NCBI GenBank assembly: GCA_002269645.1
Contig: NIVC01002704.1
Span: 1-31,298 of the forward strand
Source of the DNA: Macrostomum lignano
Lineage: Eukaryota
Reading direction: 5' to 3'
DNA length: 31,298 nt
The notes beneath the pieces were generated by a model, which was not told the origin of the DNA, ran no database searches, and saw only the letters and a list, made by a program, of their open reading frames with translations. The translations under genes and the position numbers were made by a program. Below are positions 2,260-31,298 of this stretch, in pieces (the stretch's first letter is position 1; every line of letters starts with the position of its first letter).

Positions 2260-3323
2260 GTAGATCCGAGCAGGCCACACCGTCCACAGTATGATACAGC
2301 GCAGCACGCAGCTTTATTTAATATGCATAGACGCTGCCTATGACCGTGTGACAGGGATTCGCTGAAGTCTTGGCTCATTGTTGCGACTGCGCAATTGAGA
2401 AATTTGAAATTTGGAATTTGTTAATTCCGTGATGCCTCGCATTCTGAGTACTGCATAGGTTTGTACATGATGTGCATATTTTTCCCTCAAGCATAAAATA
2501 CATAAAATTCAATGCTCAAACATATATTACATGTAAATGCATTTTGTTGATTACAGGAGCCCTGCTTCTTATCTGCTCATTAGAGATGGGTTTTGGTGAC
2601 TTTTTTGCTTTAACATTTTCTAACTCCCAGTTTAGAGTATCTGACACCCAGTTTTGAGCATCTGACATACCATATTTTTATCTGGTACTTTTACGATCTC
2701 CTATCCTCATTATTGCCGCTGATCGAGTTCCCCTTAGTTATAAAAGCAGAAGCATCAAAGTACCGGGTAGGTTTAACAAGTTCAAAAATGTCAAACTAGT
2801 TAAAAATAAATTAGCTGGTTTACAGGCTTGTTAGAGGGCATTAACGAACGAGGACTGACAGAGTTGAGTTGGCAGAAAACAGGCGCAACACCTTGAAATG
2901 ATCTGTCATGCATATTGGTGGGTGGAAGCCAACGACTTACATGTATGGGATGGCAAAGGACCGACGCCCAACCCCGACGGGCGTAGCAACGGAGGGCTGG
3001 ATGTGTGAAGCGGCCCGCACAACAGGACAGTAAAAGAACGCAGAAATGAGCTCCCCCAGATGCTCCAACTCAACCTGAGTAAAACCGTTAAGTCAAACCG
3101 CACAACCCTTGCTCCTGTAGCAGCGGGCATGTCCAGTGCTGATTTAATTGCATGCGCTGTTTGTGTAAACCCTTCCGTCGTTAAGTATGCGGTATCCCCA
3201 CCTCATCGGCGGCAGGGGGTGAAATTGCGGAAAATCTATAACATACATCGAAACTCAGCCCCGAGCAAGCTATAGGTCGGACTCAAGCCAGCCCTGCTCA
3301 AGTCATCGGCACTCAAGTGGAAA

Positions 3324-3809
3324 ACTGCAGCCCTACTATCGGTCAGAGTGACCATGACAATATCTACAGGCTATGACATGCGCAGCAGATGCTCAGGCCT
3401 CTATAAGTTAGATGGATGAGCAGGAATCTACCCTCACAGTCCCCAGCTCAAGCCGCAAGCAAGCACAGAGACCCTAGCGAGTCACCGCCCCCCCGATTGA
3501 AGTAAACCAGCTCGTCAGGACCATGGAGGCGACATCAGCCGGACAGCAGTCGGACACCCTGTCGCGGCAGCTCCGCGAGAAGGCGCTGATCTCCTTCGCC
3601 CAGCAGACCACGGCTCACGGTATAGTGCGACTCACACAGGGCTCCAGCCTCCGCCGCCTCATCTGGGCTCTGGCCATCATGGGAGCCTGCACCGGGATCT
3701 CTCTGCATCTGGCTGAGCTGGCGCAGAGGTACCTGAGCTACCCGGTGAGCACCGAGTTCTCCAACGAGGGCGCCGACTTCCAGTTCCCGACCGTGACCAT
3801 CTGCCCGAC
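3324..3809 (+). repeat. Near-identical duplicate of 12894-13378 (upstream region plus exon 1 of the DEG/ENaC genes)
   Basis: Base-by-base comparison by eye: 5 substitutions and 1 indel over about 486 bp. Confidence 0.92.
3402..3407 (+). promoter_or_regulatory. Candidate TATA box (TATAAG), also at 12972-12977
   Basis: About 120 bp upstream of the ATG in both DEG/ENaC copies. Position is the only support. Confidence 0.3.
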
Positions 3810-4511
3810 CAACTTGTTCTCATATTTCGGTCCGCAAATGCCGCCTACCGTTTCTGATGGTGAGAATTGCGCCAATATTGAGCAGCAACAGCAACAAAAT
3901 AAGATGCCACTGTGGATACCGGTATTGAGTTATCTTAATTAGGCTTTATGAAACAGGAGAAGGTCTCTGACGTACGGCCAAATTCAACAGACTTTTTCTG
4001 ACGATGGAAGCACCAGGTGGTTGCTCACGGTCTGGTTGTATTCGTGGTACTGAATAAAATCGTAGCGATGTTAACTTACAATTGAGAGTGAAATATAAGG
4101 GCGGCGCTCCAAGTGAGGTGCTTTCGACTATTGGGTGTTCGCTTTTGGGTTTGGGCTTGATCAAACTGATAGTTCGATCTGGTATTTAGCGGTAGAGGGG
4201 AGGGTTGTCATTTGTTAGGATTCACTGAAGCCGATATATTTGATCCGAGTAGTTTGGTTATAAATATCCATTTATATAATATAAATGGCCCTCTAACTCT
4301 GTAGGCCGCGATAGGCGGCTTCGTAACATGATTTTCGGCAACACGCGCGTTTTCAAACTGCTTGACACGGAAGAATGGATCAATGTCTCGATGCCACAGT
4401 ACCCGTACAACTACTATCAGGACGGAATGCTTTCGCTTCACAGGATGGCTTATCGCGACATCAACACTTTCCAGCAGCCTTACGAGACCGTTCTCTACTG
4501 CCGGTACAACT

Positions 4512-4610
4512 CGGAGTACAACTGCGTCGGCTGTTCAGTCGATTGACGGGGAGGGGGTCCGCCCTCAAGCACCCTCAATTACCCCAGATAATGCTGGCAC
4601 CCATTCTACA
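4512..4610 (-). mobile_element. SINE fragment (same family as 27363-27672), left half of split copy
   Basis: CGGCTGTTCAGTC...CACCCTCAATTACCCCAGATAATGCTGGCACCCATTCTACA matches the reverse complement of about 27490-27580. Confidence 0.8.
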
Positions 4611-5621
4611 GGGTCCACCCCAACTGCCAGCCGGAAAACTGCCAGCCGACAACTGCCAGCCGGAAAACTGCCAGCCGACAATTGCCAGCCGACAACTGCC
4701 AGCCGACAACTGCCAGTCAACAACTGCCAGCCGACAACTGCCAGCCGACAATTGCCAGCCGAGAAAACTGCCAGCTGGAAAACTGCCAGCCGACAACTGC
4801 CAGTTGACAATTGCCAGTCGACAATTGCCAGCCGAGAAGACTGCCAGCTGGAAAACTGCCAGCCGACAACTGCCAGCCGACAAGTTCTAGCTAATTGAAT
4901 CTACTGTAGCCTACTTATTAGCTAAGTAAAAAGCACGAAACTGTTTGGCTAGCAAAAGGCTTGTGGGGTAGCCTTAAATGTCGCCCTTCACTTCCCTAAA
5001 TTTTTCAGATTTCCATTAGAAGTATATATGCGAAGGAGAAGGCATTCAAATTTCGTATTTTAGGTAGCCTTTGCTCTTTCTTTGAAAGCTTTATTTAAGT
5101 AAAGTAATTTAATAGACTTATCTAGGATTGCGTCATATAGCAATCGCAATCGCAAATTAAATAATAAAGTAAATAAACTTTCAATACAGAAATATTTACA
5201 ATAGGCATTACAGAATGCCTTCTCCTTCACATATATACTTCTAATGGAAATCTGAAAAATTTAGGGTAGGGAAGGGCGACATTTAAGGCTACCCCACAAG
5301 CCTTTTGCTAGTCAAACAGTTTCGTGCTTTTTACTTAGCTAATAAGTAGGCTACAGTAGATTCAATTAGCTAGAACTTGTCGGCTGGCAGTTGTCGGCTG
5401 GCAGATTTCTCGGCTGGCAGTTGACGGCTGGCAGTTTTCCGGCTGGCAGTTTTCTCGGCTGGCAATTGTCGACTGGCAATTGTCGACTGGCAGTTGTCGG
5501 CTGGCAGTTTTCCAGCTGGCAGTCTTCTCGGCTGGCAATTGTCGGCTGGCAGTTGTCGACTGGCAGTTGTCGGCTGGCAGTTGTCGGCTGGCAATTGTCG
5601 GCTGGCAGTTGGGGTGCTCCC
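4611..5621. mobile_element. Non-autonomous Foldback/Mutator-like palindromic element
   Basis: Inverted arms 4612-5047 and 5213-5620. The outer arms are arrays of a ~12-bp unit (AACTGCCAGCCG family); the inner arms are ~165 bp of unique, near-perfect inverted repeat; the spacer is AT-rich. TSD CATTCTACA at 4602-4610 and 5622-5630 (9 bp, or 11 bp depending on where the ends are placed). Confidence 0.85.
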
Positions 5622-5678
5622 CATTCTACAGTTGGGTGAACTGAAGCAATGCAGAGTTAGGTGTCTTCCTCGATGACA
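5622..5678 (-). mobile_element. SINE fragment, right half of split copy (CORE domain)
   Basis: CATTCTACAGTTGGGTGAACTGAAGCAATGCAGAGTTAGGTGTCTT continues the SINE seamlessly once 4611-5621 and one TSD copy are removed. Confidence 0.8.
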
Positions 5679-8271
5679 GAAAAATCAAATGGATTCAGAC
5701 GGTAGTTACAATAAAATACTGGCGATAATTTGAGTCAGTTGCTTCGAAAATACAGACTATCACCAAAATGTTCTTAAAAAATTGTAAACTACTGAAATCT
5801 ATTTGTACCTACTTAGCCCGCATACGAAACTACCCACCTCACAGCTTCGCGTGCATATAGTTCACACCGTCGAACCGGACACTCGTCAGAGCTGTACCTG
5901 GTGCTCTATCAAGGCGCGAGGTATTTTTCAACTGAGGAGCAGCAAATCGACACCATGCCGGGCTTTTGGGTGGCCCTGCACGAGAGAGGTGAGCTTGGCT
6001 ACTTAGCCGAAGAGAATCGGCAAAACAGTTTTTAAGAGAGCAGAACAGCTCTTACGGATACGCGTCTGACTCGTCAGCAGAAAGAGCACGAATCTTTAGA
6101 ACCAAAGAAACCGTTTCAGGTTTCAGGCCGGACATAAAACTGGGCTTCAAAGCTTAATTTGGTCAGAAGACCTCGGCCCAGATATTCGCAGAGACGGTCA
6201 CCAAGGTCAACCGCGAGGACGCGCCATGCAGCGATGATCTGCCGAACGTCACCTACACAAAGAACTTCTCGTACCCTGGCAACTTTGAAGAGCAGAGCTT
6301 TTTTGGTACCTACCAAGACTGCGTGGTGAGAATTAAACAGGAAGAGCTCAGAACTACGTGCGGATGTCTTGGCACCCACCTGCCACTGCCAAGTGAACTC
6401 ACAAACAGCACGGATGTGTGCCATCAGATGCCGGATGAGGTGCGTTTGCATTTTGGTTTGAAGTTGCGACCTTGCAACTCGTTTGCACCTTCATCTTTTT
6501 GGGTCTTTTGTTATCCCAAAACAGCTAGTGCAGAACCATAGTGATTCTGCCTTTCTGAAACTGTGATTTCAGATTTACCACTTCGACATTTCCTCCCGAA
6601 TGAACGCGTTCAACCTAAGGGAGTACATTATACGAACCAGAACGAGTGGATATTTTTTTTTATGGATTTTCTTCTGAATACTTGGAATACTTCGAATTTC
6701 GATCTTATCAAAAGCTAAGTGCTACCGCAAGGTGTTGCACCATCAGAAGACTCAAGGAGTGTTGGACAGAGGGTGCACAGTCCGCAGCACTAACACTCGC
6801 TACAGAGCCTTCGCCACAACGTCCACTTGGCCGAAAGATTTTCGCTGGCGTCGAAAATTATTAGCGGCTACGCGAACGGCATATTGGATCGGATCAACTC
6901 TACTGGATTGCGGAGGATCCGGCTGGACTATTTGATCGACAATCTAAATCATACCCTGAGTGATTCGCCCTTTATCAGCGTGTTGGACCTGTACCCAATG
7001 TCAAACAAGACCAGCGTCTTCACTGAGTCGTTTTCCTACCTGCTACGGAATCTGTTCTCCGATCTGGGCGGCATTCTGGGTGAGTGCATGGATTTACTGG
7101 CTAAAAATGCACTTTTTTTCTGAAACCCCTGAGCTCTCCGACACTCTCCAGACATTCTGCATATGTCATATGAGCAAATGGTTAATTTAATGGTAAATGG
7201 TAAATGCAATGACGTCACCATGCACTGAAAAATCACGTCTATACCTCTGTGTCGCTTTCACAGGCCTGTGGGTTGGAGTATCGATCGTCACTATTCTTGA
7301 GATGCTGGAGCTCTTCATCCAACTAGTCCAACTGATCTTACTGAGAATCTTTGCAAACTCTAACAAATCAACACCTGGCCCTAGTGGGAGCAAAGAGAAA
7401 CCCGAGCACGGAGCTGTCAGGAACATCTATACGCTACTGAGGTCTTCAGCTACGGTGACAATTCGGTTTCCAAGGCGTCGGAGCTCGCGCTGCACTTCGA
7501 GCCGCCACCCGACACGAAGTCGAAAACTGCTCAAGTCGACGATTGCAAGGAAATGGTGAAGCAACCGAGCCTCGTTAATGCAGAAGATCTTCTCGATTTG
7601 ATTATGAGTAGCCATAAGTCACTTATATTAGTTGGGACTGATCAGCTGGTTTGGCTGGAGTACTCATGAGCACTTGAATAATTTATCAGTTTTGTCTATT
7701 TAGCTATGCTCGAAAAAAAATTTCGAGACGTATACTTGTAGAATTGTGACGGTAGTACGTATAAATCTTGTAAGCTTTATTGAAGGACTATTATTCAAAT
7801 ATGAATTATGAATTATTATATCCTTTTGCTGTCAATCTCGAAGTCATAGCCGATGATAAGGGACACTGCTGGGACTAGATCGCATTGGTCATGCAGGTAC
7901 AGAGGGGAATTGTGCAGGGGATTCTTGCAGTGGCGAGACTATGGGGTAGCTACATGTACTATTACATTGCTAAATACGAGGAATTATACTTTTGGCCTTC
8001 AACGCGCCAACTAGCCTCTCCTAGCGCTGATGATAGACTAACTCGAACATCGGAGGCCGCATGATTCATCACCCGAGCCGCTTGGCAAACCTAGAGTGCA
8101 CAGAGTACATCTCTGGAGCCGATTCTGCACTATTGGCAGTTTTGCTCACTGACTTGATAGATTGATCGACTGAGAACTGCCTTGCCATTGGTCCACTGTG
8201 ACCGGCGCCTACTAGCTTAGCTACTCATCTGAGCCATCGCCAAACAAAGAAATAAAACCGATAAAAATAAC

Positions 8272-8972
8272 TGTCATATTTAACCTTCTCCTTAGATCAC
8301 TTCACACTTCAGATTGAATTGGAGTCTCAGACTACTAGCAGTATTATTGAATGATTTCTGCCTAAATAACAGCACTGTTGAACAAAATGAGCAAAAGTGT
8401 GCGCCTAATCCAGCTACTGAAATAGGGGACAGATAAGGGATCACCCAATCAAGCAAGTCTAGGTAGCCTCTCACCCAACCAATCAGAAACTCAACAGCCG
8501 GAGACCAGGTAATCCACAGTGAGCGAATCGGCTTGATGATTCGCAGCTGTAGACTCGGGATGATGCTGTCACAGTCTTCGCAGATAGCTAGCAGGTGATG
8601 ATCTTAACTTTGATGTTCGCTGCTGATGACCGGGGGACTCGTCCTTGATGATGATGGGGGGGGGAGTCGCAATCCGGGGATCAAGAAACGACGGTCAATT
8701 CCTGGCCGGTGGAGTCAAGGGTGGCACCCGGTCGCAAGAAGGTTTGCAGGGGTAGCACCCGGAAAGGATGCCGTCCGAGCGGGCCAAAAACACCGGTTTA
8801 AATAGCCGCCAACTGGACCGCAGTTTGTTATAATGGAACACGTCGATTCTGATTGGCTGAGCCGATTTGTTAAAATGAGCGTTGAATTTTCTGATTGGCT
8901 GAGCTTGTTGCTACCCAGAATCACGTGACCGGGAGATCCTATCAGTTCCCTCGGGGTCGTAAAAAGATGACA
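8272..8972 (-). mobile_element. LTR-like segment carrying a minus-strand promoter
   Basis: TGTCAT...ATGACA termini. On the minus strand, two CAGCCAATCAG boxes (~8850, ~8893) precede TATTTAAA (~8820). No TSD found. Confidence 0.4.
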
Positions 8973-9959
8973 GGTGCGGCCATAAATCAATCAAAATCGC
9001 AACAAAATGATTTATGACTTTTCGCGTAGAATTAACAAAAATTAATGAGAAAATATACATTAGAAAGCTCTTATTAAATAGAAAGTGAAGATAATGAAGA
9101 GAAACCGCTAATCGCTAATCCCAAAGTACTTTTAGGGGTAAAACGCATAGCTGTCAAAACTGTCACAGGCTTGAGTGAACACGAACAATATGCCCTGACC
9201 TCATAAATCTTGATGGCCTGTCAAAATGATGAGAAAAAAGCTATCATTTGCATCCCCTCAGACCATCTGGCGCCCGCCTCAACACTGAGTGAGTCGCAGG
9301 TGGCTGTCAGACCAGCTTCGAAAGCGATGATTTATGACCCAAAAAGCTGCGCCTATGTTATTATGACTACTAGTATGACCAAACATTATATCTAGTATAG
9401 ATTCTATGACAATTCGCAGAAAAAGGATAAAAATGCCCATTGCCCACTGTTAGTAGGCCAGTAAGTTTAGAGCCCATGTGCTAGCGTGGAATTTGGGAAA
9501 AAGTGCGTCCTCATCAACTGGATGATATTATATACGTTAACACGTATTTTTCTCAGGGCTGCAAATTAGGCAGAAAGACGACGTGAACAAAGCAGTCAGC
9601 AAACGGCTGAGGCACAGGACGCAATGAAAAACAACCATGAGAGTGTTATGTCCCACAAACTAGCTTTCGCAAAGCACTTAAGCTGATCTGCGCTGCAGCT
9701 TAATGGGTGGTACAAGGATATTTACACATGTACAACTCTTGCTAGGTTTATAATTCCTTGGGTGGTAACTGCACACTGCTACTTTCTACAGACTTTAGAC
9801 TTTAGCTTGAGAGGAGAGAGAAGAGCGAGATGAGAGGGCAGAAAGGAGAGAGAAGAGAGGAGACAGCTCTAGAAGAGTCCAATTCTGTTCGAAAGCATAG
9901 TTTAAAGCTCGTAAGCATATTATTTGTTCATAATACTCTTAGGGTTAGGGTAAGGGTTA

Positions 9960-10330
9960 CAGAGTCCTGAAGATGTACATAACGGGATGCCCATCCTGAG
10001 TCAGGACACCAGCCAGGGCGCCCTTCGACGCATCGGTTGTGAGGATGGCGTCCTTTTCTAAGCTGTACGGTTGCACGACCGTTCGGGATGATGTTTCTCT
10101 TTTAAGTTCTTTAAAGTCCCAGAAACAGGCGTCTCGATCCGAACCACATAAACGGCGTGCCCGCCTTTCTGAAGCAATTCGATGGAGCAACCTTCGCTGA
10201 GAGGCGTTCAAATAAGTTCACCAATACAATATTGACGTATTTACGAGCTATGATCGACAGCTCCTGGGCAGAATCATCCAGTGCGATTTGCCTGTGCGCG
10301 CAACGGAGGGTCAACTTTTTGAAACTTTTT
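9960..10330 (-). mobile_element. Degenerate Ty3/Gypsy pol: RT connection plus RNase H
   Basis: Minus-strand frames give LSAKVAP...KAGTPFMW and VVQPYSLEKDAILTTDASKGALAGVLTQDGHPVMY (TDAS RNase H motif), broken by frameshifts. Confidence 0.82.
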
Positions 10331-10431
10331 TGCGTTCTTCAGCTTTGCAGATAGGGCTCGATCGATGGTATTGGGTTCGACTCCGACTGGATTTTTCCAT
10401 TGAGCAAACAGCTAACGAACATTTTGGTCAG

Positions 10432-10527
10432 AAATTCACTTCCTGGTCAAAGGAACATCAGATGTTTGCTCCACAGAGCTTACACTGTCTGCAACACCTG
10501 GATCAACTTTGACCAGGAAGTGAATTT
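10432..10527. repeat. Perfect 21-bp inverted repeat with 54-bp spacer
   Basis: AAATTCACTTCCTGGTCAAAG at 10432-10452 and its reverse complement at 10507-10527. Confidence 0.8.
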
Positions 10528-10539
10528 TCAACAAAAGGA

Positions 10540-10720
10540 TTATCCGTTGGTAATCCAAATCCTCACCTCTTAGAATGCAGCAGTTGCTTCAATTGTAAAC
10601 CTGAGGAATGCTTCAAAGTCATTGACAATTGCTCATTTGACTCTAAACTACAGATTCGAGAAGCGCTGTATATTAAATCTCAATCCCCCAGCCCTTAACA
10701 CTCAACTTCAACATAGTGTT
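10540..10720 (+). mobile_element. Penelope-like element, GIY-YIG endonuclease C-terminal relic
   Basis: Translates as HLLECSSC...FKVIDNCSFDSKLQIREALYIKSQSP and, after a frameshift, SLNTQ. This matches the F.(V/I)(I/L)D...L.I.EAL.I....P.LN.Q end motif of Penelope ORFs. Confidence 0.65.
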
Positions 10721-11115
10721 AAATATATGGAGCCCAAGCAGCTCCGTCCCTAGACCTTGTCTATCGACTACGGACAAAAATTATGTACATATCTTATTGA
10801 TTCGATTTTACACAAATATCATATTTATTCACTCGCAACCTATACTCGTACGTTAGTTCAAATAAACCTGAAGATGCACATTGTTAGTGCGAAATTCTCT
10901 CAATAACTCCCAGTAGCTCGAGTCTGTCCAACTCAGCGTTGATCTGGCTCTCCTGCAGTGCAATGGGCACAGGACGGGCTCGGCCTACTTGGGGCCCCTT
11001 GATTGGTGGCAGGGGTTCGACCGTAGGAGCCACGGATGTCTTAAAAATCGAATCAGGAATCCAGCAGGTCGTGTCCCATGAGCTCAGTCGGGTGGCGATG
11101 GTCTCGCATCTCGAC

Positions 11116-11930
11116 TGTGACGTTGCTAGTTTAAGTGGTCCCGCAAAAGGGCCGTTGGACTATAGTTTCCCTTGCAATTTCTCATATTAATTTCTCCAAT
11201 AGTTTATTTTAACGTTTACTTATAGTAGCGTGCAAATAATCTGTATCAACTGCTATTTCACTGTGTATTTGGTAGGCCTTGCGCTCGTCTGTGAATTTTG
11301 GCACGATCGATAATTTCACGTTCTCTCGCCAGCCAATGAAAACTCTCCGTGTTTTACGCTACCCCCTTTTGCGCTCTTTATTAACCCTCGCCTGGCGGGC
11401 TGGGGGCTTCACTTGTGTTCTGTGTTCTCTCTCCTTAGGCTTGTCCTCCGTCCCGTCTGGCTTGCCTAGCCTTGTCTAGCCTTGTTTTCCTTCTCTGTCT
11501 GGCTGCCTCGAGCCTCCTTATCTCACGCCACGGCTGACGCCAACCTCGCCACTGCTCATCTGCCTGCCTACTGCGCCTCACTGCCTTCACTGTGCTCATT
11601 GCCATTGCTCCTCACGTTACGTCGCCATTGCATCATTCGTCTGCCACTTGACTTCACATTCAATTTATCTTCAAAAACCATTGTTGCAGCCGCCAGTGCC
11701 CAGAAAGCTATAGTTTGTGTATTGACAGTAATAACCAAGCCTAATATTGATACTACCAATAAAAACAACTACGGCAGTTCCTGCCTTTATCGCCAAGTGC
11801 TCCGCTACAAAATCCGCTTTACAAGAGTTGACTTCAACTTATTTTGAGACTACGACTCACTACAACTCTCGTCAAAACGGCCCTTTTAAGGGTCATAGCC
11901 ATAGTTAGCCGCTACGCCAATAACGTGACA
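11116..11930 (+). mobile_element. Solo LTR (815 bp), probably Gypsy
   Basis: TGTGACGTT...AACGTGACA termini, 4-bp TSD CGAC at 11112-11115 and 11931-11934, internal CCAAT (~11334) and AATAAA (~11758), no coding sequence. Confidence 0.72.
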
Positions 11931-12522
11931 CGACAGTGGTGGGGAGATTTCCAAGCGTTTTAAGAGTGCGACTATCATAGGTTTCAAGGCGCCGCTGACA
12001 CTTTTGCAGCGCTGACTGCTGCATTAATATCAGTCATTGAATTCATTGGAATGAGAAAAGCCTAAGAAATAACCTGTGGGCTACTTCTGACTAAAGTTTT
12101 GAAAGTACTGAATGTTAAATTTTCGGAACTATAAGACCTCGAAATTTTTATGTGTATAGTTCGAAAATAGAAATATGATCGGGCCGTTCTCAAAACTATG
12201 AGGCATATGAGGACAGTCCTACAGTCCTACTGTAATGATTTGGGTCTAAACTTGAAGCTAATTTAACTGGCGTCATTTTATCTACCATATGCATGAAATA
12301 TTTCCCAGTAGTTCTTCAACAGTGCCCTTAACTTTTCGGCCTCATTGCCACCCTAAAACAGGTGCTCAACTAAGCTAACTGACCCATTGTTCAGCAGTCT
12401 CAAGCCCTGATCTTCAGACTTGACGCTACAGACTGAATAAAAAATTATTCAAATTTGATCTGTTGGAAACCACATTCGATTTGAGCTATAGCCCTTGGAA
12501 GTGAACAGAAATTTCTTTAAGA

Positions 12523-12528
12523 GTGAGT

Positions 12529-12562
<34 letters not shown>

Positions 12563-12572
12563 AAGAGAGAGA
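12523..12572. repeat. (GA)n microsatellite
   Basis: Seen directly. Confidence 0.9.
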
Positions 12573-13091
12573 TCTGTTCCTGGCTTAATCCAATCCGGAA
12601 GATTCTGTAGATTGTTCTCATGGTTTTCTATCAACCGCAAACAGAGTTGCCAATTAAAATAAGCTGTAGACTCTTGGAATTTCTGGCGCCATAAAGTCCA
12701 ACAATTTGTAGCTAAAACTGCTTTAATGAGATTAATGCTGCTTAATGCAGCCACTATCCTCCGTAAATAATCGTCGCAAAGACAAATTATTCAACCCCTG
12801 TCTAAATCTAATTAGCACGTGTGCTCAGCTCCAGTCACTGAGAGATCAGCGCAACTACACCCGACCCCCGCAAGTCACCTGCCGCTGCTCCGCACTGCAG
12901 CCCTACTATCGGTCAGAGTGACCATGACAATATCTACAGGCTATGACATGCGCAGCAGATGCTCTGGCCTCTATAAGTTAGATGGATGAGCAGGAATCTA
13001 CCCTCACAGTCCCCAGCTCAAGCCGCAAGCAAGCACAGAGACCCTAGCGAGTCACCGCCCCCCGATTGAAGTAAACCAGCTCGTCAGCACC

Positions 13092-16000
13092 ATGGAGGCG
13101 ACATCAGCCGGACAGCAGTCGGACACCCTGTCGCGGCAGCTCCGCGAGAAGGCGCTGATCTCCTTCGCCCAGCAGACCACGGCTCACGGTATAGTGCGAC
13201 TCACGCAGGGCTCCAGCCTCCGCCGCCTCATCTGGGCTCTGGCCATCATGGGAGCCTGCATCGGGTTCTCTCTGCATCTGGCTGAGCTGGCGCAGAGGTA
13301 CCTGAGCTACCCGGTGAGCACCGAGTTCTCCAACGAGGGCGCCGACTTCCAGTTCCCGACCGTGACCATCTGCCCGACGGACAATTTCGTGGACTTTTGT
13401 CAACCTGTTCCGCTTTTCATTCCTATGAGTAAGGACATGAGACACTCTCCCATTTTGATAGTGCTTACGAGGGATGATGTTGCCGAAGCCTTTGCGCCAG
13501 AGTGCCCACAGCCCTCCTTTGAATATTATTGTACATGTATCTATTGACAGAGCTTCAAATCGAATAATACATCCTGATATGTTTTAGTATACGCTTGCCT
13601 TCTGTCTAAGGTACATTGGATAAAGATTCGTTAATGGAAGTTCAAAACCCATATTGCACTATGCGCAACGATGTCAAGCTGAGAGCAACTCAGGGAGGAT
13701 TGAAAATGATCATTGCGGTTCTGAAGGGAGCAGCAGTAGAAGCCACAGAGCATATGCGGTACACCGGGGCAACAAATCGCGTACAAGCCTCGTGATCACG
13801 CAAAAAATTGGTTTCTTTTGATGATGTACAATTAACATACAACTAGTAATTTTTGAAAACTTTTCAGACTACTTCAGATGCCTTCAGGACATGGTTCTTG
13901 ACAACAATCGAGTGTACAAACTTCTTGGCTCAGAAAATTGGAATGCCTCACTGAGGGTATTTCCTTACAACTACTATCACCACGGACGGCTTTCTCTTCG
14001 AGCCGTGGCCTACCGGGGAAATTTATTCCAGCAACCCTACGAGACGGTGCTGTACTGCCGGTACAACTCTCAGCCCTGCTCATTCGAGAACTTCACCACG
14101 TACAAGGACGAGGAAGGGTAAGTGCTCGTAGCAGTTTTAGATTGAAATGAGATTAAATGAGACATTTACATTTCCACAGGTTAATGTGCATCTCGTTCAC
14201 CCCCACGAACCGCACGATCGTTAACGCCGGACCTGGCAACGGTCTCTACCTGGTGCTTCATCACGTCACTGAAAACTACCTCACTGACGAGGAGCAAATC
14301 GACTATGTGCCCGGCTTCCAGGTTGCCCTGCATGAGAGTGGTGAGTCTTCAGTGCCTTCTTCGATGCCTTCAGTGACATATTCTCACAACGCTGACGGCA
14401 ATTCTACCCATTCTGCAGACTCCTGAGCACATCCAAGCGCGCCAATACTGTACTCAGGCACACACACACACGCACACACACACTGGGTGTAGCTCGTACA
14501 GCAGCCCTGACTTTCTAATAGTCAGGCATGTAAGCTTTCTATGCCCTGTAGGTAGGCCCTCATGGACGTGAATCGAACGAAAACTCTCCAACAAAACTTC
14601 GGTGCACAGGTCTCAAATGAATGTGGCCATGCACGGAATACGGAATCGAACCAAGGCTTATGCGAGAGAGTCAGACTGAGCTGAGCTGCTCTGCTCACTC
14701 TGGTTAGTCATGCAGCTGGTCTGTTGCTTTCAGACTGCTTGACACATCAGCTTTTTTAATCGTTTATTGCTTGCACAATGCCGTTGAAAGGAAAGCGACT
14801 ATCCAGGCTACTCGCAAATCTAAAACCTAAATCTAAACCTAAATCTAAACCTAAATCTAAAACCAAAACTGCAGGCTTCAAGCCAGACATGTCGCTAGGC
14901 TTCAAAGTTCCGTTTGGCCAGAAAACCACCGCTCGAGTGTACGCTGAGACCGTCACGAAGGTCAATCGCGACGCTACGCCCTGCAGCAAAAACCTGCCGA
15001 ACGTCACCTACACCATGAACTATTCGTACCCTGACAACTTTGAGAACCAGAGCTTCTTCGGCGACTATCAGGACTGCGTGATTCGAATTAAACAGGAAGA
15101 GTTCAGAGATACCTGTGGCTGTCTTGGCACACACCTGCCACTGCCAAGTGAACTCATGAACGACACGTTAGTGTGCCATCAGCTTCCGGATGAGGTGCGC
15201 TTGTAGTATTGATAGGTCGATAGTAATCTGTATAATTAGGGTATCGGGTGAGCATTCTGCGTTCGCTGACGTTGCGAATATGTGAAAAGAGAGGCTTGCT
15301 TCACATACTGAAAATTTTGTTGTGCAGTACAGTAAGTGGGTCGCCAGGCAGGGAATTGAAGTTAATTAAATTAACTTCCAATTGTAACAAAAACTTGAAT
15401 TTTCAGGTACTACATCAGAACATTTATGCTGTTACGTTCCGTCACGACGATGGCACCGTGGGGCACACGGACTACAGAATATCAAACTGGACGGAACCGG
15501 ACGATCGGTCGTTCGACTTTGATAAATTAATTATGTTGTCGGATTACCTGAAGGACAATTGGGATAGTTTGAACTTCAATCGCAGCAAGACATTTCTCCG
15601 ATGCTACGATCAAGTTCTAAACCGTCAGAAATCGCAAGGAGTTACTACAACAAATTGCAAAGTCCGCTGCACCAAAACGCGCTACAGGGACATCACGACC
15701 ACTTCCAGCTGGCCCAAGGATTTCCAGCTGGCTGCTAAAGTTGTCCAGCGCTACGCGAAGCAAACTCTGGATAGAATACAGAACACCAGCTGGGAGAAGC
15801 GACGGCTGCAACGGTTGTACAACAATACGAACTTTTCCCTTTTCGAGCATCCGAGCCTCAGCGTGCTGGACCTGCACCCGATGTCAACGAAGACCAGCGT
15901 CTTCACTGAGTCGTTTGCCTACCTGCTGCGGAATCTGTTCTCCGACCTGGGCGGCATTCTGGGTGAGTGCAACATTAGCTTCATTACTCAAAGGTTTGTT

Positions 16001-17002
16001 CTGTTGACCACATCAAAAGGATCTAAGAATATCATGCTTTTTGCGTTTATGTTTCTATGATCCTTTGTCGAGCTACGCTTTCTTAGCTTCTCCCAGTGTT
16101 CTGATTGTAGCAAATAAATATCCTGCACAGGGACAACTAAAACACTCGGGACGCGAAATGAGCCAAATCATGGTGAAAAAAGTTGGGGGCTCATTTAAGT
16201 TTATGGGTGCGCAGGTTTTTATGCATTAAATACGGTACATTACGATCACTGCTCAGCTGCTGAAAAGAAAGACTAAGGCCACACAGTTCTATTATTTTTG
16301 CTTCACAAGGTTCAGAAGGTTGTCTAAAAGGTTTTCTGAGATATAGTTTGATCTGCAGGTAAAGACGCTGCACTTTCTCGGCATTTTTCAAATTCGCACA
16401 AGAGTTGAGGGCTTGTTATTTGCCCTCACACTTTTTGAGACTTGAGAATTGCAGTTGGAGCGGCATAGAACGTACATTACTGCTTTCAAACGAGGCCTTA
16501 ACTTTTTTCACCATGTATGATTTGGCTCGTTTCGCGTCCACAGTGTTTTAGTTGTCCTTGATCCTACACAAAATCTAAACAAAATCAAAATGTTGCTCAT
16601 AGTAGTCAACAAATACCAACAATTTATTGATTAACGTGTGGAAAATATCGATTCAAAGGCCTGTGGGTTGGAGTGTCCATCGTCACCCTCGTTGAGATGC
16701 TGGAGCTCCTCATCGACATGGCCAAATTGGTCTCGCTCAGACTTCTCGTGAGCTCAAGAAGTAAAGCCAGAGTTCATCCGCACGACCCCGAAGAAAACTC
16801 GCAGCAGAACGCCGTCAGAAACATCTACAAGACCGGCGTGTTCACATACGGAGACCACCCGGAGTCCAAGTCGTTTGAGTTCGCGCCGCATTTCGCTCTG
16901 CCGCCGAAGCCGCCTGAAGCCTCATCGATGAAAGTCGACGAAGACTGTAAAAACTTGGTGAAGCACCGGCCCTCCTTGCTTCAAAAGCTTCTAAAATTTT
17001 AA
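13092..17002 (+). CDS. DEG/ENaC family ion channel, six exons, 655 aa
   Basis: Exons 13092-13428, 13868-14117, 14180-14340, 14875-15194, 15407-15962 and 16659-17002 all have GT-AG borders with consistent phases (1,2,1,0,1), summing to 1968 nt without internal stops. Motifs: pre-TM1 TTAHG, TM1, FPTVTIC, YCRYNSQPCSF...CISF, thumb cysteines (DC...CGC...C), SSWP, and TM2 SDLGGILGLWVGVSIVTLVEMLE with a GVS filter. Confidence 0.92.
14459..14483. repeat. (CA)n microsatellite in intron 3
   Basis: Seen directly. Confidence 0.85.
14816..14868. repeat. 12-bp tandem repeat (AAACCTAAATCT, about 4 copies) just upstream of the exon 4 acceptor
   Basis: Seen directly. Confidence 0.85.
16128..16560. mobile_element. 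hAT-type MITE in intron 5 of the channel gene
   Basis: ~55-60-bp TIRs (CAGGGACAACTAAAACAC... / ...GTGTTTTAGTTGTCCTTG) and an 8-bp TSD with one mismatch: ATCCTGCA (16120-16127) and ATCCTACA (16561-16568). Confidence 0.82.
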
Positions 17003-19393: not shown

Positions 19394-22300
19394 GTGAGCT
19401 GCTCAATGCTTGTTAATATTGGTGCATAAGTCAAAAGATGCAAATGAATCGTGACATTTGCCAGCAGAATTTTTTGCCAGCCGACGTTGTACTAATCCTA
19501 GGTTCACATTTCACATGTATATTAAATAATGCATCTATGTCTAGCTCAACATACTGTGCGTGTACATTTTTAGAGACAGGGGCTGTGTGCACCCTGGTGC
19601 ACTTTAAGCGACATTGTAACACAACCGGCGAGAGGAATGGCTGCCCATTCCACCGACTCCCCTGAGCAGGCACACAAGCGCGCGGATACGCACGCAGTTA
19701 TACGCACAGGCACACACTCACACAGGAGTGTACAGCGGCCCTAACTTTATTTATCGTTGGGCATGTACACTTCACTGTGCCTTGGGGGTTGGCCCTCGAT
19801 CAATGGCGTCAATTGCCCGAGCAGAGCCAAGCCGAGATTCCAATCTAGTCCCGAATTAATGACTGCACTTGGAATCGAGTCTGGGCCGCTGGCACATCGG
19901 AGCGCCGCGCTATACCACTGGGCTACTCCCCCCCCCCACGTACATGCACATGTAATACATGCATACTTGGCTTCCGTTCAGAATATCCAAAAGGATATTT
20001 GCAGTGTGGTATATCTCATCAGAATGCTAAACTCAAATTTTAACATTTGTTTAGTACATCTCGTACTTGCAGAGAGTGAGGATTGAATGACATTGAGAAA
20101 CCTAGGTTTTTGATGAGGTTTTTATTTCATCATGTAGTATATATTGCAAGCGGATTTTCGTTCGACATTTTATTGTGTTTTCATGCTCAAGCTCAATTTA
20201 TACTTGTTTATTGAGCATCTGCAACTTGCAAGGTCTTTGGGTTACTATAGTCACTAAAACTTCACAAGCAGCATGGAACAATTGACCCAGCCCCAAAAAT
20301 GGAACACCTGTTTGGAGTTCTGTTGGTGAGATGATTTATCAACCATATTTAGTGTGTTGATGGAGTCAACGGAGAGTCTCGCGGACCGCACTGAGGTCGG
20401 AAAGGGCACCCTTAAGCCCGTGCAACATTCCGACCTTCGCCAACGTACCCAGCGTAGCTGGATGTCGCATTACGCCGACTGGAAACGACATCAACGAGTA
20501 GTTATTGAATACCTTTTTGTGTTAAAAGTCGCTGGGAAAGAAGCTAAAGGGGCTGAACCAAACTCTGGACGGTACGAGCGTACAGTAGTCTCAAATTCAA
20601 CCAGTAAAGTTTATCGAGCGTAGGCAGTCTTAAAACATTCAGTTTTGCAGCGCACTGCGGCACAGACGCGGTTGCATCTCCCTGCCCTGACGGCCCGTGT
20701 TTACAAAACCAGAATTATCATTTTAGCTCGTATACGTGAACCACAGTTTGTCAGAACTGTGTTTGAAAACCTTAAACATTTTCTAGCAGCTAATCGTGAA
20801 CGGAGATGGAAAAGCTTGCTTGCTAGCATATCTACACTGCCTTGTATTTTCGAAGGAATGGACTGCACAAACAAGTTTTGTAGTACGCTCGTTACAAGCA
20901 ATGAGGTGCAGACAGTGCAGTGTGCGGGCTCCAAAATCAGTATTAAAAAATTGCCGTCATGCTTCCATCATGAGGTTAGCAGGTAGCTCTAATTGCTGCC
21001 ACGCCTGTATAGAGTAGCGAAGGCGCACGAAAAAATGTAGTTAATTATAAATTGCAGGATACGGCCGGTACCGTAGTCAGCTGCTCATCGCAGGCTCAAT
21101 GGTGGAATCAACTAGAAAATACTCGTACCTCCGATTCAATTTTTTTAGACTGGATTAAGGCGTCCCTTTTTCTACCGTACATTCAAAGGTTGCTTCTTTG
21201 ACGGAATTTAAACTCTCTTTCTCTCTTACTGAAGTAGTTTCCGAGATCTACTTTCAGAGCGATTTCTACGAGCTGTCTCGAAGACATTACTTTTCCCTTT
21301 CCAGTGGCTTCTGCAGGAATTTTATTTGGAGGGACGCAAACCTAAGGGGCACCAATATTTGCTTTCTCTTGGTGGGGGGGGGCTTGTCTCCTAGTGGGCG
21401 CCCTTTGGTCTTTCTGGGTGTGGGCGCCCCTGTCTCTTGGTTGGGCGCCCCTGTCTCTTGTTGGGCGCCCTTGTCTCTTGGTTGGGCGCCCCTGTCTCTT
21501 GTTGGGCGCCCCTGTCTCTTGTTGGGCGCCCCTGTCTCTTGTTGGGCGCCCCTGTCTCTTGTTGGGCGCCCCTGTCTCTTGTTGGGCGCCCCTGTCTCTT
21601 GTTGGGCGCCCTTGTCTCTTGGTGAGCGCCCCTGTCTCTTGGTTGGGCGCCCCTGTCTCTTGTTGGGCGCCCCTGTCTCTTGTTGGGCGCCCCTGTCTCT
21701 TGTTGGGCGCCCCTGTCTCTTGTTGGGCGCCCCTGTCTCTTGTTGGGCGCCCTTGTCTCTTGGTGAGCGCCCCTGTCTCTTGGTTGGGCGCCCCTGTCTC
21801 TTGTTGGGCGCCCCTGTCTCTTGTTGGGCGCCCTTGTCTCTTGGTGGGTGCCCTTTGTCTTTCATGGTGTGGGCGCCCCAGTCTTTTAGTGGGCGCCCCT
21901 GTCTCTTGGTGAGCGCCCCTGTCTTTTGGTGAGCGCCCCTGTCTCTTGGTGGACGCCCCTGTCTCTTGGTGGGCGCCCCTGTCTCTTGGTGAGCGCCCCT
22001 GTCTCTTGTTGGGCGCCCCTGTCTCTTGGTGGGAGCCCTTTGTCTTTCTGGGTGTGGGCGCCCCTGTCTCTTGGTGAGCGCCCCTGTCTCTTGGTGAGCG
22101 CCCCTGTCTCTTGGTGGGAGCCCTTTGTCTTTCTGGGTGTGGGCGCCCCTGTCTCTTGGTGGGTGCCCCTGTCTCTTGGTGGGTGCCCCTGTCTCTTGGT
22201 GAGCGCCCCTGTCTCTTGGTGGGTGCCCCTGTCTCTTGGTGAGCGCCCCTATCTCTTGTTGGGCGCCCCTGTCTCTTGTTGGGCGCCCCTGTCTCTTGTT

Positions 22301-25300
22301 GGGCGCCCCTGTCTCTTGTTGGGCGCCCCTGTCTCTTGGTGGGAGCCCTTTTTTCTTTCTGGGTGTGGGCGCCCCTGTTTCTTGGTGAGCGCCCCTGTCT
22401 CTTGGTGGGAGCCCTTTGTCTTTCTGGGTGTGGGCGCCCCTGTCTCTTGGTGAGCGCCCCTTTCTCTTGGTGGGTGCTCTTTGCCTTTCTGGGTGTGGGC
22501 GCCCCGTCTCTTGGTGAGCGCCCCTGTCTCTTGGTGGGTGAACCTGTCTCTTGGTGAGCGCCCCTGTCTTTTGTTGGGCGCCTATGTCTCTTGTTGGGCG
22601 CCCCTGTCTCTTGGTGGGCGCCCCTGTCTCTTGGTGGGCGCCCCTGTCTCTTGGTGGGCGCCCCTGTCTCTTGGTGAGCGCCCCTGTCTCTTGTTGGGCG
22701 CCCCTGTCTTTTGGTTGGCGCCCCTGTCTCTTGGTGGGCGCCCCTGTTCTGGTGGGCGCCCCTGTCTCTTGGTGAGCGCCCCTGTCTCTTGGTGGGTGCC
22801 CCTGTCTCTTGGTGAGCGCCCCTATCTCTTGTTGGGCGCCCCTGTCTCTTGTTGGGCGCCCCTGTCTTTTGTTGGGCGCCCTTGTCTCTTGTTGGGCGCC
22901 TCTGTCTCTTGGTGAGCGCCCCTTTCTTTTGGTGAGCGCCCCTGTCTCTTGGTGGACGCCCCTGTCTCTTGGTGGGCGCCCCTGTCTCTTGGTGAGCGCC
23001 CCTGTCTCTTGTTGGGCGCCCCTGTCTCTTGGTGGGAGCCCTTTGTCTTTCTGGGTGTGGGCGCCCCTGTTTCTTGGTGGGAGCCCTTTGTCTTTCTGGG
23101 TGTGGGCGCCCCTGTCTCTTGGTGGGTGCCCCTGTCTCTTGGTGAGCGCCCCTGTCTCTTGGTGGGTGCCCTGTCTCTTGGTGAGCGCCCCTATCTCTTG
23201 TTGGGCGCCCCTGTCTCTTGTTGGGCGCCCCTGTCTCTTGTTGGGCGCCCCTGTCTCTTGGTGGGAGCCCTTTGTCTTTCTGGGTGTGGGCGCCCCTGTC
23301 TCTTGGTGGGTGCCCCTGTCTCTTGGTGGGTGCCCCTGTCTCTTGTGAGCGCCCCTGTCTCTTGGTGGGTGCCCTGTCTCTTGGTGAGCGCCCCTATCTC
23401 TTGTTGGGCGCCCCTGTCTCTTGTTGGGCGCCCCTGTCTCTTGTTGGGCGCCCCTGTCTCTTGTTGGGCGCCCCTGTCTCTTGTTGGGCGCCCCTGTCTC
23501 TTGGTGGGAGCCCTTTTTTCTTTCTGGGTGTGGGCGCCCCTGTTTCTTGGTGAGCGCCCCTGTCTCTTGGTGGGAGCCCTTTGTCTTTCTGGGTGTGGGC
23601 GCCCCTGTCTCTTGGTGAGCGCCCCTTTCTCTTGGTGGGTGCTCTTTGCCTTTCTGGGTGTGGGCGCCCCCGTCTCTTGGTGAGCGCTCCTGTCTCTTGG
23701 TGGGTGAACCTGTCTCTTGGTGAGCGCCCCTGTCTTTTGTTGGGCGCCTATGTCTCTTGTTGGGCGCCCCTGTCTCTTGTTGGGCGCCCCTGTCTCTTGG
23801 TGGGCGCCCCTGTTCTGGTGGGTGCCCCTGTCTCTTGGTGAGCGCCCCTGTCTTTTGTTGGGCGCCTATGTCTCTTGTTGGGCGCCCCTGTCTCTTGTTG
23901 GGCGCCCCTGTCTCTTGGTGGGCGCCCCTGTTCTGGTGGGTGCCCCTGTCTCTTGGTGAGCGCCCCTGTCTTTTGTTGGGCGCCCCTGTCTTTTGTTGGG
24001 CGCCCTCTCTCTTGGAAAAAAAGTTGAATAAGTGGAAAAAGTTGAGCTTTTGTTTTAGTTCAATTTTTGGGAGGGGCGATCAAGGGCGGGAGTGTCCCCT
24101 GGCCCTCCCTTTCTGTCTTTCCTCCCTACAGTTGTTCAGGTGTGTACATTCAGCTGTACATACAATGGTGGATGGTGGCCCACGGTTCACTAATCGTGCT
24201 AATTGAGAGTCAGAAGTCGCAGAATGGCTAAGGTACACTTGGGTTTCCAGCTCTGGTGCAATAAATTTGACGCAAAACTGCGCAATTCCGAGGGCCTTTT
24301 ACGAATCTCTCTGCCAGGGCTGCCTGACAGGACAGAATGAATTAAATCGAGCCTGATGCTGAAATTGGTCTAAAAATTAATAAAATCGCTCTATAATTGC
24401 GAAATATCTAATATTCTACAAGTTTTAATTTGAACCGAAAAAATCATAACCGCTACTTTCGACTACTATAAGTAGTAAGCATGTGCACATTTGGATTCTC
24501 ATAGCTCTGCATTCTCAAGTATTTAATAAAACATTTTATTAGTAGTGAGGCATCTAGGCTCCCATTACAGTACAGTAATCTGCATCAGAGTCTCGTGTTG
24601 TATTCTAAATTATTCACATTTTCCCGTGCAGTTACTTTCCTTCTCGCTCCGCATGTCTATTAGAGTTGTCTCCGTGCAGCTTTTATTGGCCAACGGTCAC
24701 CATCTGACCACATGCACACGGATGCAGCAGGCCTTGCCCTCAAGCATATTACTGCGAACATCTTATAATCCTTCCTCTCTGACAAGTCGCGGCAATCAAA
24801 CCTTCTCGTTTTGCTCCTTTCTATTAAGTTCGTCCTGTACAGTTCATAAATAGCTTATGACGAAGTTAAAGAACCTAAATAAAGGATCAAAAGTCCCTGA
24901 GTGACCTCAGGCTGTACAAAACAGATACAGAAGATCTTCTGTGTCATTCTAAATACCGGCGGATTCGTCATTTAATGAGCCTCAACTATACAATTCTGCC
25001 GTGCTAAACGACTGCAATAAGCGAGGCTTCGTGCACTTGAAAAACGGAGTCGCAGGAGGCAAGAGATTCTATGCTGTACAGAGCTTGCTGGTTTTGAAAG
25101 TCTCGTGCTAGGTCAAACTGCCCACACGCTCGTAAAGTTTAGGCTATTAAAACCGCCGAACTACCCTGTGCATTCGCGGCCTCACTCAACCAAACACACA
25201 CTCTCTCTCTCTCTCCCGCATCCAACTCGACTAGAAAAGAAAATCTGTGGAAAGAGAGAATCGGGGGTCGAGTGGGGTACGCAGGGCCTGTGCAAGGAGA

Positions 25301-28300
25301 AGTATAGTGTGACATTTTACCGCGTACAGAGCCAGAGTTCTTCTGCGAATAGAGCTGACACCAAAAGCATTCGATTGTAATACTGGAGTCGACCAAATCT
25401 TCCTTTACAAACTGATCGCTTCTTATCTTGGAGTTTGCCCGCATGGTCTGTCTTTCTTCTAAACTGCGATAATAGCAAGCTGACTTTGCACGCAGCCAAG
25501 GGAACGATCAAATCTTTTGCAACAGTCGGTTTCAACGCGCCAGCTCAGATCTTCTCTGTCAAAAGAGGCCCAAGAGCTGCTGCAAATGGGCTGCGTCCAG
25601 TCCTGCAGCCGACGTTCGAGGGAGCTGAACAGCTCTGCGACGGCTGAGGGGCACGACGGCTATGACCCGTCCGAGCCGACGGCCACCTCGGCCAAGTACA
25701 TTTACATACCGCCAGTTCACACAGAGGCCGCGCCTGTTGAACCAGACTCTACCGAAAGGAACAACCCAAACAGTTGTCAGGACTCAAACAATAATGGCCG
25801 GGACGAGAGCGGCAACGATGCAGGAGGTATTTTAACTCTTGAAGCTTAGGATTATCAAGGACTTTGGCTTCATGTTCAAGTTCCTTTTACCGTTGATTGT
25901 TGCTCTCACTCTGAGAACAGGAATTTTATCTAAGAAATTGAAATTTCAAATCATCTACGTGTATTTATTATTTAGGTTTTATTAGAAATGAGCTGGAGGC
26001 TGTTAAAAGAGCAAAGTACGTGTTTGAGTTTCTCTAGAGGAAGCATAGTGCTGTATGGACTTTTTCCATAGACAAATGAGTGGTCTGTGAAACCTCCACA
26101 ATAGCTATCCGGCCGCTCAAGGTTTGGTCTCATCTCAGCTCTCTTCTTTCTCTCTCTTCTCTCCTCTCTCATTTTCCCTTCCCCTATCGTCGCTCTCTCC
26201 TCTCCCCTATAGTCTCCTCTCCCCTTTCGTCTCTCTTCACTCATCTCCCCTCTCCTTTCCACTCGCCTCTCTCCCTCTCCACTCTCTCCTCTCTCCTCTC
26301 TCCCATCCCCTCCCCTCTCTCTCCTCTCTCTCTCTCCTCTCCCCTCTTTCCACTCATCTCCCCTCTCCCCTCCTCCTCCCCATCCCCTCGTCTCTCCCCT
26401 CTCTCCACTCATCTCCCCTCTCCTCTCTCCTCTCATCTCTCCCTCTCCCCTCCTCTCCCGTCTCCTCTTTCTCCTCTCTCCCATCCCCTCCCCTCTCTCT
26501 CCTCTCTCCTCTCCTCTCCCCCTCTCCCCTCCTCTCCCGTCTCCTCTTTCTCCTCTCTCCCATCCTCTCCCCTCCTCCCCCATCCCTCGTCTCTCCCCGG
26601 CCTCTTCAAGCTCCTCTCCTCTCTCAGGCTCTTGCGCTAGATACTATTTCTAGCATTTAAGGTTCGAAAAAGTTTACCGACCCCCTGGCTTAGAAATTGA
26701 ATTCTCCGTCCAGTTTACTTTTCTAATTCTACCTTCCCCTCTTTTTCATCCTAGGGCAAACAGGAATTAATTAGCAGAGTTCGCAAATTCCTGTCTAAAC
26801 CTAGCGGATAAAAATATGAGACCGGTGCTTCCTTACCTCCGCACTGTAATATGACCCTAAATGTACATAACTGGGTCTTTTAAAGTTCAAATTAACACAG
26901 TCGCTTTTATTCTGAGTGATAGGAACAGTCCTTTTAATATTTTCGTGCAAGACACGACTATAGAAATTCGTTCGATTTTGTAACTGCCAGAAGCCTTCAG
27001 GTTTGAATGGCATTTTGAAGCAATAAACACGTGACCTGAGAGACTCGGATACTCTCACTCAGTGCTACTCCGGTATCCTTGAAGCTGAGCTATCCTGATC
27101 AATTGCTGAGCTCTAAAAGCTGCGACATGACAGCAGCAAGCTACACTGACTCAAATCTCAATCCACCCACAGTTCCGCCGGACCATCGGGTCAGTCAGCA
27201 GCAGGTGACGTCATCAAACCACCACAATGGTCCGTCCGCAGTCACAGATGGTCCAGACTCTGTGGACAACTCGGCCAATGGAGTTCGTAGGCCTCTTCAG
27301 GATGCTGCATCGCCAGGTATTTACATGAGCATGCGTTTTCTCTTATATCTACTTAAACGTGTAGATAGGGGGTTGCAGCCTAGTGGTCAGAGCGTCGGAC
27401 TCACGACTTGAAGGTTAGGGGTTCGATTCCCTATCCTACTATGAACAATTTGTGTCCTTGAGCAAGACACTTAACTCTGCATCGCTTCAGTTCACCCAGC
27501 TGTAAAATGGGTGCCAGCATTAGCTGGGGTAACTGAGGGTGTGTGTGGCGACCCCCTCCCTGGACTGAACAGCCGTACTCAGTCTTCAGATGCGCCGCGC
27601 AATAGCTGCGGCTGAGCTGTCGGTTGCACATCTGGCCCAATTGGGGCAGGTGTAATCAATATTATATTATTATTAAACGTGTGTTTTTTCAATTGGTTTG
27701 GTTTGGTAACGTTGACTGTCTCTTCTGTTGCGACCAAATTTGTTCAAATTATCTTTTAAACTGTTGAACTTGCTGCGCAAATCGAGAAGCATATGCAAGG
27801 TTACATTGTTTGACAGTAAACTCTAGTTCAGGGCAAAATTGTGGTGCCAGGTAGCAAAACAATTAATCTCGAACCTGATAAGTCTGATGATTTGACGTAC
27901 TGAAGCAGTTCTATTTCTGAGGGTCTACAAAAACATTTTTAAGTAATACTTTATATCATTTCAACAACTGTATTTATTTTGAACCAAATGCGAGCTAAAA
28001 GCAACTGCATTCAGTCTAAATTTAGCACCCGCAGTCTTAAACCAGCTTACCATGGCATTCCTATCAGACAACCAAAGCTAACCCAACCCGTTCCTTGCTT
28101 GCGATTAAAGCAAAAATCTATTTATGTATGGTTGCTCTTGGAGTCTGATTTCTATAAGAAGACGTATACCATCTGTGTATTTATTTATATTTTTGTCTAA
28201 AAACGAACCTGCAGCATTCTCAGCATCCTCTGCAGCCTCATCAACATCCGCATCAGCAGCAGCGCCAGCAACAGCTTTGGCTCTGTTGAAGCCTCGCAGT

Positions 28301-30908: not shown

Positions 30909-31298
30909 GTGAGTGGATCACAATTGTGGATTCATTGAGTTTAGCAAATATGAGCACACTAATGTGAAACTGAACGCTAGGCTTAGACGAGCTCTGGATT
31001 ATGTAGCTAATAGAAGCATTTCCAAGCAAATTGCAGGCAGAAATTGAAGATTTGAATCATAGCGAACCTCCAGATCAGGGGTCGGCACCTCGAGGACCAG
31101 ATAGAGAACCTAGAGCATGACTGCCGCCAGAGAGGGAGAGAGAGGGAAGAGAGAGAAGAAGGAAAAGAGAGGAGGATGAAATCGAAGAGGAGAAGCGAGA
31201 TGTTAGAGAGGAAAGGTTGAGCGATCCGGATTGCTTTTGTGAAGTTCAAAGGACCCGGCGTCCTACTACATTTGTACATTTGTGCTCTATTGCTCATA

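Follow-up and report, generated by a model that had tools for sequence, protein, structure and literature searches.

A short, almost identical tract is shared by two otherwise strongly diverged channel genes of Macrostomum lignano. The two genes, a decayed copy (copy A) and an intact copy (copy B), are arranged in tandem, 9.57 kb apart, on contig NIVC01002704.1 (assembly GCA_002269645.1), of which positions 1 to 31,298 of the forward strand (31,298 nt, hereafter the window) were analysed. An earlier reading of the letters alone (the original prediction) had described a channel gene; both copies can now be assigned to the DEG/ENaC family (Pfam PF00858) as tandem paralogs. The tract, which comprises promoter-proximal DNA and the first part of exon 1, very probably results from interlocus gene conversion, a recent ectopic and non-reciprocal transfer between old tandem duplicates. 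A recent ectopic gene conversion was also what the original prediction had proposed, and the proposal is supported by a synonymous divergence (dS) of 0.014 in the tract versus 0.75 in exons 2-6 and by near-identity at silent and non-coding sites. Selection on the protein cannot make silent and non-coding positions almost identical, so that the data call for a recent non-reciprocal transfer.

The block was found by direct alignment of positions 3224-3909 with positions 12794-13478, together with a BLASTN comparison of one half of the region with the other; both tract copies come from this single assembly. It covers 3324-3809 (+) in copy A (486 bp) and 12894-13378 (+) in copy B (485 bp), with 98.8% identity. 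The tract is composed of 199 bp upstream of the ATG followed by the first 287 bp of coding sequence (codons 1-96 of exon 1). In copy A a TATAA motif is found at 3402 and the ATG at 3523, and in copy B these elements are at 12972 and 13092. Five substitutions and one homopolymer indel separate the two copies, in agreement with the roughly six differences in 486 bp and with the exact coordinates given at the outset. In the 199-bp non-coding part (~98.5% identity), copy A has an A for a T of copy B at position 3395 (copy A numbering), a G for a C at 3519 and a run of seven C instead of six near 3488. Within the coding part, one difference is synonymous (3636, A in copy A and G in copy B) and two change the protein: C versus T at 3692 (Thr in copy A, Ile in copy B) and A versus T at 3697 (Ile versus Phe). 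The GC content of the tract in copy A is 61%, that of its flanks 42-52%.

Similarity disappears at both ends of the tract. The 5′ edge is formed by ACTGCAG, and at the 3′ edge the last shared base is position 2 of the Thr codon in ...FPTVTICPT, so that the abrupt ends read by eye (at ACTGCAG and after the ICPT codons) are indeed sharp. Local alignments of the flanks, over 100-600 bp on the upstream side and 120-500 bp on the downstream side, gave scores not above those of shuffled sequences, and residual flank homology was rejected on this ground. When the flanks and first introns were queried against the complete window by sensitive BLASTN, no match was obtained, and homology between the two loci is not resumed anywhere upstream of the tract in the window. 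Two other origins were considered and rejected. RNA- or cDNA-mediated conversion is unlikely for a tract that starts ~78 bp 5′ of the TATA-like box and stops before the first intron. An embedded small-RNA gene as cause of the upstream conservation is not supported, there being no Rfam or tRNA hits. At the 5′ junction we recognised no spliced-leader remnant in an informal comparison. Exact look-ups for independent copies, made with the P0001 product (a paralog introduced below) and with both exon-1 read-through open reading frames (ORFs), gave none, and neither a metagenome scan for exact matches to a 34-mer from the tract nor one with the exon-1 core peptide gave anything useful.

Outside the tract the two copies are strongly diverged. 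Exons 2-6 are 72-79% identical at the nucleotide level (1020 matches, 350 mismatches) and no intron segments of A and B align, as the original prediction had noted by eye. It had also suggested a comparison of dS exon by exon; Nei-Gojobori estimates in exons 2-6 range from 0.69 to 0.83 (pooled dS 0.75, non-synonymous divergence dN 0.24), compared to a dS of 0.014 and a dN of 0.009 in the tract, where a single synonymous difference is found in 72 synonymous sites. The probability of observing no more than five mismatches over 485 sites is ~1e-53 at the mismatch rate of exons 2-6, and ~1e-16 even if a mismatch rate of 10% is assumed. From these values the tract is estimated to be ~50-fold younger than the A/B duplication. 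Its divergence (1.03%, Poisson 95% interval 0.33-2.4%) is about equal to that between the subgenomes of M. lignano (S, L1 and L2), which differ by 1.4-2.4% (PMC10733133). This proximity is useful for dating, as a comparison of the three homeologous loci might reveal how the region looked before the transfer and how it looked afterwards.

Copy B is intact. Our model (13092-17002) has six exons, a 655-amino-acid open frame and five introns, all GT-AG. Exons 1 to 3 lie at 13092-13428, 13868-14117 and 14180-14340 (all +), followed by exon 4 at 14875-15194 (+), exon 5 at 15407-15962 (+) and exon 6 at 16659-17002 (+, stop codon included). The product matches the complete Pfam profile ASC (PF00858, amiloride-sensitive sodium channel; E = 2.3e-55, profile positions 1-455 of 455, residues 25-558). 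Family signatures are present in the translation: the N-terminal HG (TAHG), FPTVTICP after the first transmembrane segment TM1 (FPxxTxC) and GVS in TM2 (LWVGVSIVT; G/S-x-S), in addition to a Cys-rich ectodomain. Judged from its translation, gene B thus is a predicted full-length member of the DEG/ENaC channel family, and no unusual feature was found in the protein itself. UniProt holds gene B only as fragments P0114 and P0180, which are mis-predicted pieces from another assembly and both contain exon 4.

Copy A spans 3523 to ~7593 with the exon order of copy B. Its reading frame is interrupted by two stop codons and shifted at least five times, and exon 2 is cut short by a foldback transposon. 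With exon-intron structure retained together with stops, frameshifts and an insertion, it is an unprocessed pseudogene, and the contrast between a decayed and a functional paralog proposed from the letters agrees with these lesions and with the intact frame of B. Exon 1 of copy A (3523-3859, 337 nt) has the same length as that of copy B. Its last part lies outside the tract: this tail (NLFSYFGPQMPPTVSD, 3810-3859 (+)) is identical to the B tail (13379-13428) at 23 of 50 nt and ends in an intact phase-1 donor, G|GTGAGA. The intron-1 acceptor is intact as well, and exon 2 (4305-4546 (+)) is open and in frame with exon 1, its 3′ end and donor being lost. Exons 1 and 2 together form an open ORF of 192 amino acids, closed by a TGA at 4544-4546 within the transposon.

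Decay is evident further downstream. The exon 3 remnant (5845-5988 (+)) contains an in-frame TAG (5858-5860) and a net 17-nt deletion that shifts the frame. Exon 4 (6120-6439 (+)) is free of indels, with an in-frame TAA (6155-6157), and is 78.6% identical to that of B in nucleotides and 75% in amino acids. At least three frameshifts are found in the exon 5 remnant (6615-7079 (+)), the 5′ third of which is hardly alignable. The exon 6 remnant (7264-7593 (+)) retains the TM2 sequence LWVGVSIVT; its frame shifts following ...RNIY, and indels are numerous. From the 7-8 lesions counted in ~1.38 kb of exons 3-6 (protein-aware count), the chance of finding none in the exon-1 tail plus exon 2 (~290 nt) is ~0.2.

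The foldback, miniature inverted-repeat transposable element (MITE)-like insertion occupies 4521-5682 (1.16 kb) at the end of copy A exon 2, where it removed the donor site. Its arms are inverted repeats, 95-97% complementary, built of 14-bp tandem repeats (CAACTGCCAGCCGA). A short copy of 135 bp consisting of termini only was observed at 27449-27583, in opposite orientation, in an intron of a Phactr gene described below; both ends of the 4521-5682 element match this short copy.

We then compared both copies with the close relatives of the channel, which are all from M. lignano (UniProt entries P0001, P0021, P0019, P0023, P0025/P0179 and P0018) and were retrieved by an exhaustive search of representative sequences and a cluster look-up; these comparisons are at the protein level. 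The exon-1 core (amino acids 17-96: pre-TM1 region, HG motif, TM1 and FPTVTICPT) is 88-91% identical among paralogs, with 89-91% among B, P0001 and P0021, while outside the core the paralogs are 40-63% identical. Directly after ICPT, identity among the paralogs drops from ~90% to 6-33%, and the 3′ boundary of the tract coincides with the end of this family-wide conserved core. At the other end the situation differs: over the first 16 residues A and B show 100% identity to each other and only 21-29% to other paralogs. The upstream DNA, considered for the A and B loci in the window, is common to these two copies alone. An exon 1 equally conserved across the family had been named as an observation that would speak against conversion. 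This holds for the core but does not extend to the N-terminal 16 residues or to the upstream DNA. It can also be observed that the conservation of the exon-1 core has razor-sharp edges, of which the cause may be selection or repeated homogenisation of exon 1.

In exons 2-3 A and B are not particularly close to each other. For these exons, identity between A and B is 55-63%, that of A to other paralogs 54-67%, and that of A or B to the others 54-76%; in exon 4 A and B are slightly the closest pair (75%). At the protein level, A and B are nearly the same in the tract and no closer than other paralogs in exons 2-3, a pattern compatible with the incongruence that conversion would leave.

As for the direction of the transfer, we infer that it probably went from the functional copy B to the dead copy A. 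The protein encoded by the tract core is 91% identical to P0001 and 89% to P0021, and P0001 and P0021 are 90% identical. The core is therefore as close to each of these paralogs as they are to each other, which indicates that the tract sequence stayed under constraint. Furthermore, at both non-synonymous sites B carries the family state (I/V and F) and A a derived residue (T and I), which speaks for B as donor and for later drift in A, the recipient.

The junctions suggest how such a transfer might have occurred. A double-strand break would have formed 5′ of the recipient's exon 1, and the end bearing the exon-1 core would have invaded the paralog, through the core because no other part of the gene has kept enough similarity for pairing. 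Repair of the heteroduplex would then convert the core up to the exact end of homology, after ...ICPT. In the other direction, DNA synthesis would continue through ~200 bp of donor 5′ untranslated region and promoter, until the new strand is rejoined by end joining to non-homologous upstream DNA, leaving a sharp and arbitrary 5′ boundary at ACTGCAG. One-sided homologous invasion completed by end joining would fit both a 3′ junction that is in register and a 5′ junction that lies in non-homologous DNA.

Several points weigh against this interpretation. The tract is known from a single assembly, and a misassembly is formally possible. The direction is based on few sites (two non-synonymous differences and one synonymous). 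In addition, the exon-1 tail and exon 2 of copy A are lesion-free too, so that prior decay of exon 1 in A is not proven; given the ~0.2 chance calculated above, an argument for direction based on lesion density is weak. With respect to the pathway, the old promoters may have been similar enough for an ordinary two-sided conversion. Finally, a heteroduplex between sequences that are ~15-20% diverged is normally disfavoured.

One alternative combines two elements: the converted promoter, exon 1 and open exon 2 of copy A would still be active, and the sharply bounded core would owe its conservation to recurrent, family-wide homogenisation of exon 1 and not to selection alone. We consider this combination improbable. 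Also improbable is that the 5′ module of copy A is in use in one of two specific ways, either by supplying a second promoter and a first exon that is joined by splicing to the exons of B 9.6 kb downstream, or for the production of a 192-amino-acid peptide with TM1 only. The phase of the A donor matches that of B, and the donor, the intron-1 acceptor and the exon-2 frame are all preserved, next to the 7-8 lesions in exons 3-6 of the same copy. However, this absence of lesions in ~290 nt is only weakly surprising. Moreover, both non-synonymous changes that followed the transfer are in A, at conserved TM1 positions, which looks like relaxed constraint. If the module did serve, its function would be maintained through conversion by B.

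Two further explanations concern the way in which the tract copies were put together, and we hold both to be very unlikely. A single unequal crossover (non-allelic homologous recombination) within exon 1 would generate a chimera with a B-like 5′ half and a 3′ half from A, and a 3′ junction in register inside exon 1 is indeed what a crossover gives. Its product would nevertheless share all upstream DNA, whereas homology ends again 199 bp 5′ of the ATG, which excludes a single event: a second, independent rearrangement exactly at the 5′ boundary would be needed.

The other explanation is an assembly or polishing artefact that wrote one tract copy into the wrong paralog. M. lignano is a neopolyploid with three subgenomes, 36% of the length of the Mlig_3_7 assembly is chimeric between subgenomes (PMC10733133), and the tract copies are known from one contig only. 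Against this, the copies are not identical, and each of them is surrounded by unique DNA and continues, with frame and register kept, into the exon-1 tail of its own locus. Subgenome chimerism joins copies that are ~1.5-2.4% diverged, not paralogs diverged by 25%, and a 486-bp repeat is much shorter than the long reads behind the assembly. An artefact is accordingly unlikely.

The last alternative, purifying selection without any DNA transfer on an exon 1 under stronger constraint than the rest of the gene, can point to the high conservation of the core among paralogs (88-91% versus 40-63% elsewhere) but is refuted by the identity at synonymous sites (dS 0.014 versus 0.75) and over 199 bp of non-coding DNA, to which are added N-terminal 16 residues identical in A and B only and a copy A that, as a pseudogene, lacks protein-level selection.

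The preferred reading, a recent interlocus conversion, has several implications. It provides a case of ectopic conversion, with both ends resolved to the exact base, in a pair of very old duplicates (dS ~0.75) that retain a single short, highly constrained segment from which pairing can start, and the copied tract runs on into non-homologous promoter DNA. For annotation, a pseudogene whose promoter, start codon and first exon all look perfect will mislead gene finders and RNA-seq mapping. For phylogenetics, exon 1 is best left out of trees of the M. lignano DEG/ENaC family.

Other features of the locus were recorded. About 1 kb upstream of pseudogene A, an 18/36-bp satellite (CTGCGTCTCCCCTCTCC) extends from 1030 to 1815 (~44 units); ~225 bp further on, 12.5 units of its reverse complement are found at 2040-2264, and the pair forms a large imperfect palindrome. 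The spacer between A and B contains a decayed fragment of a long terminal repeat (LTR) retrotransposon pol gene at 9960-10217 (-), with a match to Pfam RT_RNaseH_2 (E = 6e-8). The fragment probably extends to ~11159, as the ORF 10887-11159 (-) is pol-like by eye, without a Pfam match. A 20-bp minisatellite (GTGGGCGCCCCTGTCTCTTG) is present in 127 copies (2.6 kb, window 21420-24015) and shows an AT skew of -0.87 to -0.89.

Towards the end of the window, a Phactr gene (RPEL repeat; phosphatase-and-actin-regulator) is encoded at 25586-30911 (+) and runs off the window end. Its exons 25586-25825 and 30205-30864 are 100% identical to UniProt A0A1I8IMJ8, whereas exons 27118-27315 and 29061-29183 match the same entry at 79% and 93%; the ORF 30109-30912 is 100% identical to two M. 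lignano proteins. The part of the window from 20094 to 31298 was also compared with Mlig_3_7 scaffold NIVC01002703.1 (60573-81589, reversed). With 1.5% substitution divergence, a value within the range given above for the subgenomes, and many small indels, the scaffold is, from its sequence, assigned as a homeologous copy of the locus over the part compared, consistent with the S/L1/L2 structure. A block of ~1.85 kb on this scaffold (7509-9359 of the compared stretch) is absent from the window near 29830, and the GTGGGCGCCCCTGTCTCTTG array appears much shorter there (~1260-2160, <1 kb).

The event described here belongs to a known type of phenomenon and involves no new mechanism or kind of element. 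Textbook cases of interlocus conversion are the 5′ tract of HBG1/HBG2 and the pairs CYP21A2/CYP21A1P and GBA1/GBAP1. With these pairs A and B have in common a short near-identical tract in diverged tandem duplicates ~10 kb apart, a non-reciprocal transfer, a pseudogene as one partner and the location in the 5′ region of a gene. They differ in the likely flow of sequence, from gene to pseudogene and without phenotypic effect, whereas in the textbook cases it goes from pseudogene to gene. They differ also in that the tract flanks are without detectable homology and that the duplicates, with a dS of ~0.75, are far past the divergence usual for conversion. Invasion of one end by synthesis-dependent strand annealing (SDSA), finished by non-homologous or microhomology end joining, has been described in plants, Drosophila and mammalian cells. 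The A/B tract resembles such products in having one junction in register, at the end of the core, and the other at an arbitrary point in non-homologous DNA; unlike in the documented cases, the pathway here is deduced from junction anatomy alone. As for the genes themselves, B is a full-length member of the DEG/ENaC (ASIC-like) family, which is expanded in M. lignano.

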